From positions 806,001 through 870,000 of the forward strand of contig OX337230.1 of the NCBI GenBank assembly GCA_946965045.2: a DNA stretch of 64,000 nucleotides, read 5' to 3'. The translations under genes and the position numbers were made by a program. The stretch comes from Epithemia pelagica. Taxonomy: Eukaryota; Protista; Bacillariophyta. The notes beneath the pieces are model-generated. The model did no database searches. It worked only from the letters and a program-made list of their open reading frames with translations, and was not told the origin of the DNA. Below, piece by piece: positions 5,965-45,957 of the stretch. Numbering within the stretch: the first letter of the stretch is position 1; every line of letters begins with the position of its first letter.

Positions 5965-8104
5965 TAGAATGTTGGATTCATTTCAATCAATGCCATGGTG
6001 TAAGGAGTGGACAAAGTGAATGAAGGTGCTTGGGAAAAGAGTGCTCATTCGTATTACTTCAGTTCACTGTGGAGGTACCGGTGGGTCTTGTCGTTGAGGC
6101 TAAAAATGACAAAATTTCACATCGTGGATGCAGGTCTGATGTCGGGAATAGATCCCCCAGTTACGAGAATGAGAATGAGTGTCTTTGGTGAGTGCTTTCG
6201 CTGCATCGTGGAAAACAGGACAAGTCGATCACGAAGACACGGAACCATTGGAGACGCGTAATGTGTATTCGATGACAAGATCAATATATGGATGATTGAT
6301 TCTAATAGTGAACGAGTCCAATGGACGCGTGCAGGAGTTGATTACCAGAAATATTAGAGTCTCTCTTGTCATACACTCGACTGTTGCAAAATGTCAAGTC
6401 ACCCACAAAGACGAACGATGGGCCATCACAGGATCATTTTCTTACAATCATACTTGGAGTGTAAACTCGTGATCATTCTTTCTTTCTCGACGGTTCCCAT
6501 TCTCGGTTGGTTTTGAATAGCAAACTCACATGCAAGACACATCACGGTGTACATGAACATGGTTTGCACTTTGAACCCGCTGTGAATGAACATGGTTTGC
6601 ACTTTGAATGTTCCACGCCATAGACACCCATAGTACCACTCTCGGAACTTTTCGAGACCTCCTCCGTTATGATCCGTAGCCCAGAATCGTCGGATCCATG
6701 CCCCACAATCACGGGTCCGCTTGGGGAGGCGTGACAATGGCGTTGTTTACATCTTCACACGATTTCTCCACAGAAACTCGGATGTACGGAGCAGGAGTTC
6801 AGTTCTCATTCTTCCCTTGAGTGATTGCCCTCTAGAAAGCGTCCAAGAAAAAGGAGGTCCATTGCACAGACATGTCATGCCGAGTTGCATTCGAGACATG
6901 CAAGGATGAAGTTGGAGTTCTCGTCGTCTCTCCATGTCCTTGACATTCTATGTTCACCGAGGTCTACAATACCTTCCTAGAGAAAAGGATGTGTCTTGTG
7001 TCTTGCAGTAAACCACGACAATTCTTGTCTGAGACTTGCTTTTGGTCGCCAAATTTTTGCATTGAGGTGGACACTAAAACCAACACCAAGCTTTCCTTCT
7101 TTCAAACATTGCTGTCAGCTTCGAGCAATGACCTCGTTTCGGAGAGTGAAGAAGGGCAAGGAAACAAGAAAAGGGAGACAAGAGACAATGTCTTGGTTCT
7201 TGGTGTCTGAGGTGTGAGTAGGGAGCGTCCTTGTTTGTAGTGGATTGTTGAGACACGCAAAACAGAAAAAGTGAGAGAAGAAGCCTTTCTTTCTTCTGAA
7301 CTGTAGACTACCATAGCACCTAAGTCCCACAGTACATTCGGAAGAAAGAAAATTCTAAAGATACTTTCTTAAGCAAATGTTATGTATCACATATAAGCCC
7401 CTGTCCCTTTCATGTGTCGTATCTCTGTCTCAGACTCAGACATCGGTCCAAAGTTGAACTCTTCAGCACACGTCTGTAAGAGGTTTCTGTCATTGTTGAG
7501 CGATGGGAAGTGGAATGAGAAAGGTGCATGACGTCACCACTTTATGTCGCATAACCGTCACAATACCCTTTTCGAGGAGAGAGATCGTTATAAAACAAGT
7601 CTCACTTCATGTCTTATCAGCAATATTATGAAACTCTCTAGCGCTTCACATGATAATTGAAGAAGAAGACTGAGAATGGTGAAAGGAAAAGGACAGAAAG
7701 CAGACCTCATAGCACAAGTACTTGTACACTAGGTAGGACGTATCCTTCTCATGTCTGAGGTGCACAAAGAAAGCAGAAAGGAAATTCCTTGTTTACCTTG
7801 TCTTTTTACGCAAAGATATGGAGGAGCGGAAATCAAGATTACACTCTATCGGTACAAATGAGGAAACTCCGTAAAAAGTTATACGATAAAAAACACAAGG
7901 CGTGCTGAGACATACATGCTGACATCATGAAAATCTTTCTCCTTTCTCTTTTTCCCTTTTTGCGTTCGATGGTTGCTAGAATTTAACGTGCAAACCGACA
8001 AATGCCAGGAGTGCAAAAGCCACACTTGTTTCGCTCACAATTTTTCGACGAGTGCAAGTCAAAAGCGAACATCAAGAGAAACAACATTTGACAAAACTCT
8101 CATC

Positions 8105-10074
8105 ATGGCTCCCCGCAATCAAGACGAAACGATTCAAGAGATGGACGAGGTGGATCAGCAAAAGGTTGCCAACAACCTCCCTGCCTCCCAGTTGAGCAAC
8201 TCTGAACTTGTCCCTGACGCTGGAAAGGTTCACATGGACGAAGGTCAGCCATGGGGTGCTGGTATCATCAACGACTTTAAGCGCACCGTCGGAACGCACT
8301 GGGTCACCGAGTTCACCAACTTTAACCAAAAGACCGTTGCTGTGACACTTTTGGTGTTCATTTCCGTCATTGCCCCCACCTTGACCTTTGGAGCCGTGTA
8401 CGGAAAAGAAACCGACAACAAGATTGGAGCGGTCGAAACCATTTTGGCCACGTCGTGGGTCGGAGTGACTTACAGTCTCATTGGTGGTATGCCTCTCGTA
8501 AGTAAAGACGAAACGGTTCATGATTGATCGACGTGATTGTTCCATACTTTCTAACAGCATCTGGTCAACTTTGCAGTGTGTTATTGGCTCCACTGGTCCA
8601 GTGCTTGCCTTTACCAAGGCCGTCGTCCGAATTGCCGATAACATTGGTGTCCCTTTCTTGACTTTCAGCGCATGGTGTCCCTTTCTTGACTTTCAACGCA
8701 TGGATTTCCTGCTGGTTGTTGTTCTACTGTGTCACTGCCGCCTTCTTCGACTTGACTCGCGTCGTTCGTCTCGCCACTGGTTTCACGGATGAAATCTTTG
8801 CCTTTTTGATTGTGACAATCTTTGTGTTTGACGCCGTCGGTGATCCGTTCTCGGATGTCGGTATCCTTCGATACTTTGACCCCAATCACCCTTCGCATGA
8901 AGACTTTGAAGACGACCCAGACTACGACTACATGGAAGTTGCTTTTCTCAGTACCTTGCTTGGTTTCGGAACTACCGCCCTCATCTTCTTCTTCCGAAGC
9001 TTCAAGAACTCGTCCTTCTTTTGCAACGATGGTGTTCGTAACTCGGTCCATGACTTTGCCGTCACCATGTCTGTGTTGATTGCCACTGTGATCAAGGAAA
9101 TCCTCTTCAGCGATGTTGAAACTGAACAATTGAACGTTCCTGACAAGTTCGAACCTTCCTTCAAGTGCTGCGACGACTCCTGTAGCACATTTTTCCCTGA
9201 TGACTGTCCTGATCAAGCCGAAGCTGCCAGAACTCGTGACTGGTTTGTCGACTTTTCTGACTTGAACGGCAAGGGATGGGTACCCATTGTTGCTGCTTGT
9301 CCTGCCATCCTTGCCTTCTTGCTTTGCTTCCTCGACAACGGTATCACATGGCATTTGATCAACCACCCCAACCACAAATTGAAGCACGGTGAAGCTTACA
9401 ACTACGATCTCTGCTTGAATGGTTTGTTCAACTTTGTCAATGGTATCCTTGGTCTTCCCTGGTTGGTCGCCACCACGTTTCCTTGCATTATCCATCTTAA
9501 CAGTTTGGCTGACAAGGACAAGGATGGTAACATTATTGACGTGCAGGAGACTCGTTTGACCTTGTTCTTTTCGCACTTGATGGTTGGATTGTCCTTGCTT
9601 GTTCTGGAACTTCTTCAATTGTTGCCCATGCCTGTCTTGTACGGTGTGTTCTTGTTTATGGGTCTCTCTGCCTTGCCCGCCATGCAATTCTGGAACCGCA
9701 TCTTGCTTTGGTTGCAACAACCCAGCCGATACCCCGACACGGTCTTCAACCGGTACATGGAAAAGCCCAAGGTGCACTTGTACACCATCCTTCAAATCTT
9801 CTTTTTCGGATTGGTCTTTTTGGTGCAAAACATGTCGGCCATTTCCATTATTTTCCCCCTCATGACCTTGTTGTGTATCCCGGCTTGTTTGTTCTTCTTG
9901 CCGCGATTCTTTGAAGGTTGGGAATTGTGCTTGTTGGATGGTGATGACTTTGAAATCAAGGCATGGGTTGACAAGAAGCGCCATGCCCAACATTCTCTGA
10001 GATTTGCCGACGCCGAAGTTGCCGATTTGGAAGCGGACGACGGCGAAGGAGAAATTGTGGAGAATGCCCATTAA
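8105..10074 (+). CDS. SLC4: SLC4-family bicarbonate/anion transporter, frame disrupted by a 28-bp tandem duplication at 8646-8701
   Basis: FISVIAPTLTFGAVYG, GSTGP, FTDEIFA, LPWLVATT, VQETR and VLYGVFLFMG motifs of HCO3- cotransporters; intron 8498-8576. Confidence 0.9.
8646..8701 (+). repeat. 28-bp tandem duplication inside the SLC4 exon
   Basis: ggtgtccctttcttgactttcaGcgcat followed by ggtgtccctttcttgactttcaAcgcat (one mismatch). Confidence 0.97.
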
Positions 10075-10467: not shown

Positions 10468-12720
10468 TCATTTCTTTTTGCCCTTCTTTTTACCCTTTTG
10501 TTTTCCTTTCTTGTGATTCTTGTTGTTGTTGTTGTTGTTGGGTCGATTCTTTGTTGCTGAGGATGGAATTGGCACGGCCATGGTGTCATTAGTACTGTTG
10601 GTCGTTGTGGGACGTGAAATGGCATCCAACAAGGACTGTTCCAAATCGGCCACGAGTTCGGCATTTTCGGCATGACCCACGAGCGCGTGACGCAATCCTT
10701 GTTGGACTTGTGCCATGGATAGTTTGGAAAGATCTTGTCGAACCGACGCAAAAATGACGACATTGACATCCTTTTCGTCGTTGTCGTCGTCGTCCTGGTC
10801 CTGGTCGTCTTGCAAGTGTGGATCGGCAATGACCATGGAAGGAAACACTTTGGAAATATTGTCACAGACCAATCCCAACATGGCTGGATCTCGGGCTGCC
10901 ACATTCATGGCCAAAATGCCGCCCGGTTCTTCCGCGACATTTGTGGTTGTGGTATCGGGTGGGTCGGTGCTCGTCGTGGTCGTTCTTCCGCCGAGCAATC
11001 GGTACAAGCGACGAAGATACTCCAATTGTATAAAGGCAATGGGAGGACACGACATGCCTGTCGTGTGATTTGGTCGCATCACGCAATCAACAAAAACAGC
11101 AACACAAAAGGTACACAAGGAAAATGCCAGAGCAACCAGAGTCAGTCCAGTGAGTGAAAGCTGTTTCATCCACAACATTCCAGAAACGCCCACGTTCTTT
11201 TGTGTCGTGCCTGCAGGTTTGCTCTCTGGAACTGTTTTTGTCGAGTGTGAGACAAGTCTCTCGTAACGGCCGTACGTACCAACGGTGGAATCTTTGGAAT
11301 CGACATCCACGACAATACAGGAAAAGTGACCGGCTGGATAGGTGAGAAGGAGCTTGGACCGGTCGTGGTTGTCGTCGGAAACCGAGGGAGCAGCAGCCGA
11401 AGCAACCAGGGGTATAGTCGTGTCTGTGTTCGCGTCGGAATTCGTAGTGGTAGGCTTGTCGTCGTCGTCGTTGTCGTCGTCGTCGGAATTCGTTTCGGTT
11501 GGCTTGTCGTCGTTGTCCTTGTCCTTGTCGTCATTGTCAGTTTGGTCCGCCGTGTCGCGGACTTGCAGGTCCAATCCATTGCCAATGGCAATGTGGACCA
11601 ACGAAGAGTGAGAGGGGAGACCAAAATAGTCCGTGGCCACGCGAGCCACGACGGCATCCAATTCGACCGCCGTCCAGTCCCAGTGGCATGATAAGTACTG
11701 CAAATGCGTCAACAAGCCGCCTCCCCCCAATCCCACAATCAAACCACGACGTTTGGGAGGTGATGGAGGAGACAAGGACGACGAGGACGGCGACGTTTCC
11801 TCTATGACTGTAGAGGTCGACGTCAAGGCCAAGAGTCCAGCCGCCATGATGCGATGATACTCAAAGGAAACTTGACTGGCATCGACCGTCCATTCCTCCA
11901 TTGGCTGGTCGTTGTCGTCGTTGTTGTTGTGGTTGTTGCTCTTCGTGGTTCGCGTGAGCACGACTTCGGATTGAATGACAAAGGGATTGGACAGGAAATA
12001 CAAGCGTCGCACACGTTCCTGTTCGTGTTCGACCAAGACTTGTTCAATCAAATACGGACCGGAACAGGCCGTCTCCCCTTGATGCAAGATATTTCGTTGT
12101 CCAATCCCATTCAAGGCCATAAAGGGAATGGTATTCGTTTGGGACGACGACGACGACGATCGACGATGGGCGGGTGGCAAAAAGGTGCCTTGTCGTCCCA
12201 GAATTTGCACGACAAAGGTTAATTCGTCTTGAATGGTTTGCGGTGTTTGATAATCACTGTAGGATCGTCCCAGGGCCACGGCAATCAACCGACCGGCTTG
12301 GGCCGATTGACACACTTGCTGCAATCCGCGTCGGGTTCGAAACAAGTATTCCGATTCTCGACCGGCGGGAATCAAAAAGACGGCCGTCGCACAGTGGAGG
12401 GAAACGGTGGTGGTGGTGCTTGTCGTGGTGGTGGAGCGTGTCGAACCACGGTGCAATCCGGGATGGTCGACCACGGTCAATCGATACCGATACGACTCGG
12501 TTCCAGTTCTCCTCGTCGTCGTCGTTGTGGTGGTTTCTTCGTCTTCTGTTTTGGTAGCAGCAGCACCCTGTGGTGGTGATTCGGGATACAACAGGACATG
12601 ATCGAATCGTGTGGCATTCCAGTGATCAAACGAGGCTGGATGCAAGGCCGGTCGGGCCACCAAGGAAATACCATCCTCTTCCTTCTTGTAAGACGACGAC
12701 GACTGTTCCGAGAGACTCAT
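10468..12720 (-). CDS. SAM-dependent methyltransferase resembling the C-terminal (spermidine-synthase-like) domain of METTL13/eEF1A-KNMT; probable intron 11279-11058
   Basis: AVFLIPAGRESEYLF, LIVGLGGGGL, VELDAVVARVATDYFG, VVDVDSKD, and G|MSCPP after splicing. Confidence 0.75.
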   Translation of the reverse strand: MSLSEQSSSSYKKEEDGISLVARPALHPASFDHWNATRFDHVLLYPESPPQGAAATKTEDEETTTTTTTRRTGTESYRYRLTVVDHPGLHRGSTRSTTTTSTTTTVSLHCATAVFLIPAGRESEYLFRTRRGLQQVCQSAQAGRLIAVALGRSYSDYQTPQTIQDELTFVVQILGRQGTFLPPAHRRSSSSSSQTNTIPFMALNGIGQRNILHQGETACSGPYLIEQVLVEHEQERVRRLYFLSNPFVIQSEVVLTRTTKSNNHNNNDDNDQPMEEWTVDASQVSFEYHRIMAAGLLALTSTSTVIEETSPSSSSLSPPSPPKRRGLIVGLGGGGLLTHLQYLSCHWDWTAVELDAVVARVATDYFGLPSHSSLVHIAIGNGLDLQVRDTADQTDNDDKDKDNDDKPTETNSDDDDNDDDDKPTTTNSDANTDTTIPLVASAAAPSVSDDNHDRSKLLLTYPAGHFSCIVVDVDSKDSTVGTYGRYERLVSHSTKTVPESKPAGTTQKNVGVSGMLWMKQLSLTGLTLVALAFSLCTFCVAVFVDCVMRPNHTTGMSCPPIAFIQLEYLRRLYRLLGGRTTTTSTDPPDTTTTNVAEEPGGILAMNVAARDPAMLGLVCDNISKVFPSMVIADPHLQDDQDQDDDDNDEKDVNVVIFASVRQDLSKLSMAQVQQGLRHALVGHAENAELVADLEQSLLDAISRPTTTNSTNDTMAVPIPSSATKNRPNNNNNNKNHKKGKQKGKKKGKKK

Positions 12721-16740: not shown

Positions 16741-16947
16741 CGTTCAAGGGGATCAGGAATCAGGTTTTCTTTTGTGCGTTTTGCTTGTCTCTTTTTTGCT
16801 TGTTGCGTGTGTTTGCACCATGATGACGAGGAGGACTCGACCACTGGGTTGTGGTGACCAGTCATTATTCAATCCATAATAATCCAGATATCTCTAGCGG
16901 TGCTATTGATTTTTCGAGGACCGCACTCACGATTTCCGCGAGATGGT

Positions 16948-19481: not shown

Positions 19482-20396
19482 AACGTGACAGGCATACCAT
19501 CTTTCGTTTATGGTGGTTATGCATAGTTGTTGGGAGATGTGGCGAATGCACGGCGTGTTTGTCTCGTCTATAGTGTAACAATAGAGAGTGACAGAACTCA
19601 ACCCGGAAAACCGTTTTGCAAGTGCTGCCATCACCAGAGACAAGTCGTATCGTGTTAAGTACTAGGTCCACATGGCACACAGTAGTTGGGATGCATAAGG
19701 TTTGTGTATGATATTGCATCATGCATTCTCCTTCTTTCAATGTTGAGTACTCCCCTTCCACCAGAGTCAATGAATAGAGAGGGTAGAAATAGCTTCATTT
19801 CCTCGATGTCTTGGACTTGCTCTCTCAGCTTGCATTTCGGAATTGTGCCCGCATCGTTCTTCATTTTCTTTGTCTTGTTGAGGAGCGGTGGTTGCGTATA
19901 TGGATACAAGGCTTTGGAAATATCTGGTGTTTGGTACTGTTTGATACTACTCTACATCCAGAATATTCATCTCTTCTACTATGCTTAGGGCTTGTTGTGC
20001 TGCTCGATCTACTTAGAAGGGTATGCCTACCTTTGGCAAGTCTCTGGTCCATCTGGAGGTTGTTGTCGTTTGTAATTCTCAATTTGAGAGAATAGTCTTA
20101 CGACACTCGTAGAAAGCTCGTCCAACTTGTGTGTGGAATGTGGATGTGTGTAGAGTGTAGACTCGCATGTCCGACGAATACGAGTACCTTACTATTTCTG
20201 CGCTCACTACTCTCCCTCGTCCAATTTCAGCTGGGCTTACTACTCTCCCTCGTCCAATTTCGAGCGTCTGTCCTACTCCTACTCTTACTTGTACTCCTCT
20301 ATTTCATGTCATGCAGTCTCCTGGTAGCTAGGTATTATTTCGATGTCTTCTAGGAGTAGGTAGTAGAGCTACTGTCGTCGGGGAGTAGGAGTATCC

Positions 20397-33281: not shown

Positions 33282-34047
33282 GGAGGCAACTGAATTCGAG
33301 GTTCCTTCGGATGTTGTGGCACGGATGTTGTGGCAAGCCCTGTTTTGTGTCTTTTCCCAAACCGAAAGACGTTTGCCACTACAGCAACGTTTCCCACGAA
33401 AACGCATATCCTGCATTGGGTTTTCTATCATTTGTTGACTGTTGAATATCCACGAGTGAAACCACGGGCTTGCACTCTCTTGGTGCATCGACCATATATT
33501 GATGTTTCGATGCCATTCATTCCTCTGTGGAAGTCGAAACCACTCCTCAAGTTTCATCCTTGATCAACAACATACAAAAACACTTTTTTTCGTGGATCAG
33601 GATCCATCATCGAAGGTACCAAAACTCCATGAAGTGACTGGGACATCGAGAAGGCTTCTTCTGCTCGTTGTATCGGCGTCAATCCGTTCCATGCTCTTTC
33701 GGTGTCCACGGTAGTCTCACCAGACCTGCGTTGAAAGGACGTTATGAAACCACTTCTTCTCCATGGTCTGTTCTTGTCATTGTTGGCTCTTGGTTTTCTG
33801 CGTTCGATGGAGTCACGCGCGCCTTGCTCTCTTTTGGCTCGCTTCACCATCTCGCGGACGAAATCGTGAGTGCGGTCCTCGAAAAATCACCAGTACCGCT
33901 AGAGATGGATCATTACGGATCGACTTGTAATCGCTGACCACAACCCAGACCCAGTGGTCGGAGTCCTCCTCTTCACCATGGTGAGAAGTGAGAACCACAA
34001 AAAAGCAAAAGCAGAAGCAAAAGCAATTTAATTCCTGATTCCTGATC

Positions 34048-40152: not shown

Positions 40153-40504
40153 GGCTTTTTGTAAACGGGAGTAACACAGTTTGTGCTTTGAGCAAACGGT
40201 CGCAGTCCACTTTATGTAAGACTCATATTCAGCCGATATGTGCGAAGGGGCATTCTTGATTGACTGCGAAGGAGCACTCTTGATTGACTAACATCCTCTC
40301 TCCTCTCACAGAATACGCAAGAAAAGGTCGACACACATTTCCACAGAAGACATTCTGTCCCAGAGAGAATTTCCAGAAAAAGGTCTGGTTTTGCGGTGGT
40401 CCCTGTTCTTGGTTTCTATCATTGTCGATGAAAAGCTCCACCCTGGGGGTTCAAAAATTTGTTTTTCCACATGCAGCTCTTGGTTGAGCAACCAGCTCAT
40501 AGAC

Positions 40505-44500: not shown

Positions 44501-45957
44501 AGCAAACGCCGAAAAGGAACTAGAGGAAGCGCGATCGTTGCTCGAAGAGAAGCAACAGGAACTGAAATCGCTGGAAGATGATGCTTTTGCAGTGACTGAG
44601 GCATTCGAAAAGGTCAAAGAACTTGCGGCAGAGAAGAAATCGGAGCTGGATAGTATTGCCAATTCCGTTGAGAAGGCCAAGAAGTCCCTCGCGGGTCTTC
44701 AAGGAAAGGAAGTCGAATTGGTAAGCCAAGTGGACGCTATCACCGAAAAGCTCTCGCAGTATTCCGACAGTATCACGGCGTGGGATCGATCCTTAGACGA
44801 GCTTATTGAGACTGCAAAGAAGACCGAACGTGATCTCTGGGAAGACGAAGAGGAAGAAGCCAGTGGCGGAGAGGACGAACCAGACAACACAGCAGATGAT
44901 GTCGAGATGAAGGATGTAGAAATTGACGATAAGGAAGACGAAGAGTTGAAAGATGTTGATATGGATGACAACGAAGAGGAAGAAAATGACGAACAACAGT
45001 CTTATGAGGCCAGTATAACGGCATTCTATCCAACATACAATGAACGTGCTCTTGATCGATATGATTCTGAAGAGCTCCGGAACAAAATTTCAAAGCTCGA
45101 GGCGGAGCGTAAATCGTTAGCGAATGATGTCCATTTGGGAGCCATAGCGGAGTATCGTAAGAAGGAGAAAGAATATATGGCAAGGTAAGATCCCAGTATC
45201 GTTGATGCTCCTCGTTAATGTTTTCTCTTCTTACTTCTAACATTCTTGCCATCGTAGGATTAAAGAACTTGACGAAGTTACAGAGGAGCGAAACCTTGTG
45301 CGCCGAGAATTTGAAGAGTTGAGGCGAAAGCGTCTCGAAATGTTCATGGAAGGGTTCAACCAGATTTCTTATAAATTGAAAGAAATGTATCAAATGATTA
45401 CTTTGGGTGGCGATGCAGAACTTGAGCTCGTTGATTCACTGGACCCATTTGCTGAAGGCATTGTCTTCTCGGTGCGCCCTCCGAAGAAAAGTTGGAAGAA
45501 CATCAGTAACTTATCGGGTGGCGAGAAAACGCTGTCATCTCTGGCACTTGTTTTTGCACTTCATCATTACAAGCCTACACCCCTGTATGTTATGGATGAG
45601 GTCGACGCAGCGCTTGACTATAAGAATGTCTCCATTGTCGGAAACTACATCAAAGAACGGACTCGAGATGCACAATTCATTATCATTTCGCTTCGCAACA
45701 ACATGTTTGAACTGGCCGATCGGCTAGTGGGAGTTTACAAGACCTTTAATTGCTCGAAATCCATCGCCGTGAATCCGGCTTCCTTCGGCATCGAATGTCA
45801 GCAAAATGGGATTAGTGCCACTCCAGCTCTTCGAAATCGATCCAATTCCATGGCCCCAAACCAGAGTACATCGAAGATGGGTGGAGGTAGGCCAAGTGTG
45901 CCTTCCACACCAATGGTCATTGCTCCTTCCAACCATCCGTCTCCAAAGGAAAACTAA
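41527..45957 (+). CDS. SMC4: Structural maintenance of chromosomes protein 4 (condensin), 5 exons
   Basis: LENFKSYAG, Walker A GPNGSGKSN, hinge GRLGDM...VTLDG, LSGGEKT and DEVDAALD. Introns 41611-41694, 43228-43301, 43884-43949 and 45185-45257 all keep frame. Confidence 0.96.

Follow-up and report, generated by a model that had tools for sequence, protein, structure and literature searches.

One SLC4 gene copy of the diatom Epithemia pelagica is probably a young frameshift allele, either a null allele or a nascent pseudogene, that arose by a microhomology-mediated tandem duplication of 28 nt within an expanded diatom SLC4 family. The copy lies in the window that we analyzed, a stretch of 64,000 nt (G000:C3:806001-870000) of an assembly of 60.5 Mb in 23 contigs (G000). 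All features are described on its forward strand and, unless stated otherwise, in its coordinates.

Gene Model and Family Membership

Exon 1 (8105..8497) begins with the ATG at 8105 and comprises 131 codons in an open frame. It is followed by the sole ordinary intron of the gene (8498..8576), which measures 79 nt, reads GTAAGT...CTAAC...TTGCAG and is inserted in phase 0 at a position common to all nine paralogs compared, in which the intron has a length of 79-120 nt. Exon 2 (8577..10074) is broken by the duplication and ends with the natural stop codon TAA at 10072-10074. The gene model was searched piece by piece, that is exon by exon, and not as a joined protein. Exon 1 matches the PF00955 profile at positions 3-83 (E=2.8e-15, 56.5 bits) and the segment 8701-10071 matches it with E=4.7e-89 and 300 bits, both above the gathering cut-off of 27 bits, whereas the piece of 32 amino acids before the second copy of the duplicated unit reaches 17.9 bits and falls under the cut-off only through its shortness. 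The profile positions are collinear over the three pieces (3-83, 85-114, then on to 549), so that the gene would be collinear with the SLC4 family if the extra 28 nt were removed. The C-terminal piece furthermore matches the solved AE1, AE2 and NDCBE structures by sequence homology, its residues 1-420 giving E=5e-55 for AE (8d9n) and E=2e-50 for band 3 (4yzf). Judged by these profile and homology matches, the gene is a member of the SLC4/HCO3- transporter family (PF00955), in line with its assignment to SLC4 in the first-pass annotation. An uninterrupted frame for the whole SLC4 membrane domain is nevertheless missing, owing to the 28-nt duplication.

The best relatives carrying a name all come from pennate diatoms (Amphiprora MMETSP1065 82%, Epithemia 77-78%, Phaeodactylum 72%), the Phaeodactylum SLC4 protein (P0015) showing its 72% identity to the C-terminal 457 residues of the gene. 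With the diatom SLC4 transporters described so far, the gene has in common the PF00955 domain and its membership in a family with several copies in the genome of a pennate diatom. The literature on diatom carbon uptake describes PtSLC4-2 and diatom SLC4 proteins as bicarbonate transporters of the CO2-concentrating mechanism (Nakajima et al. 2013, via PMC5853789; PMC5853954). The window copy differs from PtSLC4-2 by its frameshift, and its own transport role is a prediction from sequence. About 1.5 kb upstream of the start codon, at 6540-6610, the window also contains an imperfect direct repeat (…GAACATGGTTTGCACTTTGAA… twice).

SLC4 Paralogs in the Genome

About ten SLC4 paralogs were detected in the assembly, eight of which were aligned at the duplication site, and nine paralogous introns were compared. 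At least four paralogs have open exons, namely C3_423k and three copies on C8, and the copies on C6 and C18 are open too if a second intron is assumed. This second intron (~2142-2224 of L019 on C6, 83 nt; ~1412-1507 of L020 on C18, 95 nt) is inserted in phase 2 after ...FLDNG and is absent from the C3 and C8 copies, a presence/absence difference that reflects either gain or loss. The redundancy of the family is thus directly visible in the assembly.

The chromosome-3 subfamily is partly decayed, as three copies other than the window copy are broken as well. In C3_565k (L010, G000:C3:562485-566858), codon 123 in exon 1 is changed from TAC to TAA, and exon 2 is fully open. C3_419k (L015, G000:C3:417395-421159), which has a first intron of 120 nt, carries a frameshift near residue 255 of its C-terminal piece, and C3_566k (L016, G000:C3:564819-568484) is an inverted partial fragment that covers residues 211-432, contains a TAA and adjoins C3_565k. 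An ORF on an ENA contig of 1,612,201 nt (P0131) is 98% identical to exon 1 of C3_565k and is free of the stop codon. The stop in C3_565k may mark a further null allele of the SLC4 family that is confined to one haplotype or assembly.

A 28-nt Tandem Duplication Shifts the Reading Frame

Positions 8640-8705 read AACAT-[TGGTGTCCCTTTCTTGACTTTCAGCGCA]-[TGGTGTCCCTTTCTTGACTTTCAACGCA]-TGGATT. The repeat search returned two copies of a 28-nt unit (8645..8672 and 8673..8700) that stand head-to-tail without a spacer and are identical at 27 of 28 positions (96%); Tandem Repeats Finder reports an array at 8645-8703 with a period of 28, 2.1 copies and a score of 111. The single mismatch sets G8668 in copy 1 against A8696 in copy 2, the latter being part of an Asn codon (AAC) that reads AAY in all aligned paralogs. 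Past the duplication, the shifted frame runs ...FLTFSAW-CPFLDFQRMDF... up to a premature TGA at 8790..8792. The first-pass annotation had already described a 28-bp duplication with one mismatch, a frameshift leading to this stop and a lone A-to-G difference at 8668 that makes an AG, and all three observations stand.

The trinucleotide TGG opens each copy (8645-8647 and 8673-8675) and occurs a third time directly behind the second copy (8701..8703), the period of 28 nt extending into this putative slippage or repair junction, which indicates that the ancestor had TGG...TGG spaced 28 nt apart. Short spaced repeats of this type are the usual substrate for microhomology-mediated tandem duplication. 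Both the 28 nt and the G are absent from 8/8 aligned paralogs of the same genome, in which the site reads TTCAAY-GCN-TGG, and this makes both the duplication and G8668 derived. By this alignment, the duplication is specific to the window copy, A8696 represents the ancestral base and G8668 the derived one. From the adjacent copies, the TGG borders and the single-copy TGG...GCN-TGG ancestor preserved in the paralogs, we infer microhomology-mediated tandem duplication as the mutational mechanism.

This kind of event is already known. Short microhomology-mediated tandem duplications with a frameshift show the same spacerless copies and 3-nt microhomology at the borders of the unit, and frameshift pseudogenes of such origin in multigene families likewise combine a length that is not a multiple of three, a premature stop and broken sister copies in the cluster. 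Nothing material differs in the present case, in which the mismatch between the copies happens to make an AG. Within the 64-kb window we found eight further tandem duplications, each made of two copies of a unit of 14-48 nt; such mutations are therefore frequent here, and it is to be expected that one of them will occasionally strike an exon of a redundant gene out of frame. Two-copy duplications are located, among other places, at 11433-11532, 16768-16810, 20198-20261, 33308-33335, 40241-40289 and 44904-44983 of the window, and most units are multiples of three.

Other Records of the Locus

The protein collection holds the frameshifted ORF (P0129) and the exon-1 ORF (P0130), both located on an ENA contig 772,197 nt long. 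This contig matches G000 exactly at four ORFs, among them ORFs that are 100% identical to G000 paralogs, and as the only second record of the duplication it probably represents the same assembly and not an independent one. On the ENA contig of 1,612,201 nt, P0121 is 97% identical to the C-terminal part of the window gene; it starts at the equivalent of the GTG at 8812 and its tail is frameshifted. The exon-1 ORFs of that contig match C3_565k and C3_423k and not the window gene. The C-terminal ORF of the window (8812-10071) is missing from the protein collection although P0129 and P0130 are present, P0121 being its nearest entry.

The origin of the second record leaves some room for the duplication being unrepresentative, either as an assembly or consensus artefact or as a variant of one haplotype or of the sequenced culture next to a working intact allele. 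C3_565k offers a precedent, as exon 1 is intact in its counterpart on the 1,612,201-nt contig and carries the stop in G000 (P0131 vs P0132), so that assembly or haplotype differences of such a kind do exist. We nevertheless regard this explanation as unlikely. Typical long-read consensus errors are 1-nt indels, and a second tandem copy of 28 nt that differs at one base would be atypical of them, whereas the abundance of similar two-copy duplications in the window speaks for a real mutational process. A real heterozygous duplication, moreover, already falls under the explanation as a null allele.

The Proposed 22-nt Micro-Intron

The one derived base, G8668, completes a GT...AG stretch of 22 nt (8647..8668) that reads GTGTCCCTTTCTTGACTTTCAG and also contains a pyrimidine run and a branch-like TTGAC motif. 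Excising it turns the protein into ...RIADNI-AH-GVPFLTFNAWIS..., which is open down to the natural stop and contains two extra residues (Ala-His), just as had been claimed before. The stretch thus combines the GT-AG ends of a U2-type intron with an open frame upon removal, and could be read as a newborn intron that was created by the duplication plus one point change and is removed, at least partly, by the diatom spliceosome. The product would be a working transporter in which Ala-His follows the Ile of ...RIADNI|GVPF.... In the alignment to NDCBE, the duplication site comes directly behind the GSTGP motif (TM3), and an Ala-His insert at this position, beside a loop-like stretch aligning to 'KEYGLSYL' of NDCBE, might be tolerated. 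We consider such a birth of an intron very unlikely, for the reasons given below.

For the range 8577-8900, every possible GT/GC-AG excision was enumerated. Four of them restore the frame, all four by using the AG at 8667-8668, and only the 22-nt excision spares the invariant TM3 block; it is the sole one that leaves the conserved residues in place. The same enumeration yields no frame-restoring excision for the pristine duplication. Joining the natural donor at 8498 to any later acceptor in this range also fails to restore the frame.

The other three excisions (73, 82 and 91 nt) bear on a further explanation, according to which the gene would be rescued by a larger alternative intron, by +1 ribosomal frameshifting or by reinitiation giving two half-proteins. 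On paper they do restore the frame, but they cost 15-21 residues, among them the invariant GSTGPVLAFTKA block of TM3, and depend on the poor donors GTCCAG, GCTCCA and GTGTTA. A canonical slippery site in the right phase for +1 frameshifting is absent, and the first downstream in-frame ATG available for reinitiation stands at 8935, past ~240 transporter codons. Such a rescue is the least probable of the explanations considered and can almost be dismissed.

With respect to the 22-nt stretch, its length is the most obvious difficulty. The nine paralog introns measure 79-120 nt and the credible introns in 244 kb of the genome 66-120 nt, which, albeit for a small sample, places 22 nt far outside the local range. 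The 244-kb figure comes from a strict scan that asked for a GTAAGT donor, 70 or more open codons on each side and a blocked read-through; it returned no credible intron below 52 nt, just trivial AAG/GAG artefacts. A scan of 277 kb with relaxed donors was noisy and showed enrichment only at 61-100 nt. Taken together, the two scans and the nine paralog introns give no short intron class in this genome. Any credible intron found exceeds the candidate 3- to 5-fold in length, and this is evidence toward a null allele. The range of about 66-222 nt given for local introns by the first-pass annotation holds roughly: besides the 79 nt of the ordinary intron of this gene, strong-donor candidates elsewhere in the window measure 66, 68/82 and 118 nt.

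The nine paralog introns have GTAAGT (seven introns), GTAAGC and GTACGT as donors, with G at +5 in 9/9, whereas the donor of the candidate reads GTGTCC and is devoid of the A at +4, the G at +5 and the T at +6 of the local consensus. In its branch-like TTGAC motif, the A is separated from the 5' end by 14 nt and from the 3' end by only 7 nt; in a crude motif scan, local CTAAC/CTGAC motifs are mostly found ~18-36 nt upstream of the acceptor.

Comparison with short introns of other lineages leads in the same direction. Spliceosomal introns of 15-25 nt are documented, with 15 nt in Stentor, 18 nt in Bigelowiella, 23 nt in Trichomonas and ~25 nt in ciliates, and such introns are reported only where short introns are typical of the lineage (PMC12316389, PMC5014332). 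Among NCBI Gene records, a survey gives 30 nt as the shortest validated GT-AG intron (PMC4675715), and the mean intron of Phaeodactylum has 142 nt (PMC5859163). The candidate resembles the ultra-short introns of Stentor, the Bigelowiella nucleomorph, Trichomonas and Paramecium (about 25 nt) in its length class and its GT-AG ends. In those lineages, however, ultra-short introns form a regular class with conserved motifs of its own, whereas the introns of the present genome measure 66-120 nt.

Intron gain by tandem duplication has been documented for units that contain AGGT, from which exactly one unit is removed (PMC3265369, PMC4974935). As in these cases of the Rogers model (ATP2A1, Hellsten et al. 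2011, PMC3265369; potato RdRp, PMC4974935), an intragenic duplication here supplies a removable sequence that rescues the frame. The model cases, however, use the GT of one copy together with the AG of the other and leave the mRNA unchanged, whereas here AGGT is absent from the unit, the AG stems from a later point change, and 22/28 nt are removed so that 6 nt stay behind. The classical excision of one 28-nt unit was considered as well and had to be rejected, as no GT-AG pair of this spacing exists.

To judge how easily such a rescue arises by coincidence, all 168 single substitutions of the pristine duplication were tried. An open, frame-restoring GT-AG excision results from 19/168 of them (11%), 11 of the 19 acting through a new AG; among the transitions, 4/56 (7%) do so. 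With a chance of 7-11% for a rescue on paper, the 'perfect' intron is not statistically surprising.

Searches for products of the locus gave no additional support to splicing. The protein of the spliced junction was not found among the 485 homologs in the protein collection, nor did this collection contain the transcript-type N-terminal product of ~202 aa. The JGI metagenome contigs, too, contained no match to a gapped DNA pattern that allowed for the site with the duplication, without it and after splicing.

The first-pass annotation had held intron gain and a null allele to be equally plausible. While the mechanics that it described are correct, the balance does not hold, as the short length, the off-consensus donor and the branch-like A 7 nt from the acceptor favor a null allele over the birth of an intron, and the 7-11% chance of coincidence adds to this. 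On present evidence the micro-intron is a coincidence, and most likely it is not spliced. If the 22 nt were spliced after all, this would be a rare direct snapshot of the birth of an intron; among the spliceosomal introns known from lineages with normal introns of at least 60 nt, it would be the shortest by a wide margin, and it would break the lower limit of intron size assumed outside a few specialized lineages.

Age and Selection

Pairwise dN/dS values between the window copy and its paralogs range from 0.09 to 0.13 at a dS of ~0.5. Polarized with three sister copies, the terminal branch of the window copy shows an N/S of 6/36, compared with 5/29 for C3_565k and 10/16 for C3_423k; a replacement excess on this branch was not detected, the ratio being the same as for C3_565k and below that for C3_423k. 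These substitution patterns suggest that the gene was under purifying selection through almost all of its history. Given such strong purifying selection on the lineage, the break is very recent.

The purifying selection on the lineage and the lack of any sign of decay also count in favor of the birth of an intron, because the missing replacement excess is equally compatible with a still-functional or rescued gene and with a very young break. Three changes in the window copy (R190G, V423F and R559C) affect columns in which conservation among 79 outside homologs reaches 97% or more, and five sister copies have 0-2 such changes. At most, they hint weakly at relaxed constraint.

Proposed Course of Events and Implications

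For the preferred reading as a young frameshift allele, we propose that 28 nt of exon 2 were copied in tandem in one SLC4 paralog, with the TGG microhomology priming the copying through replication slippage or end joining of the polymerase-theta type. The A-to-G difference would have arisen during error-prone copying or shortly after, and the resulting GT...AG pair would be coincidental. The message would encode ~200 residues, with exon 1 followed by 32 codons from the start of exon 2 and then by a nonsense tail of 39 codons. With the stop at 8790-8792, a functional transporter would presumably not be made from this copy, a loss that could be tolerated owing to the several intact paralogs in the genome.

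For the annotation of the genome this means that a frameshift should be noted for the gene and that no 22-nt intron should be inserted to force an open frame. Read in this way, the window copy matters little in itself and would add a further young loss-of-function allele to a family of carbon-uptake transporters that has expanded and is partly decaying, while providing one data point on the frequency of short tandem duplications in the coding sequence of this diatom.
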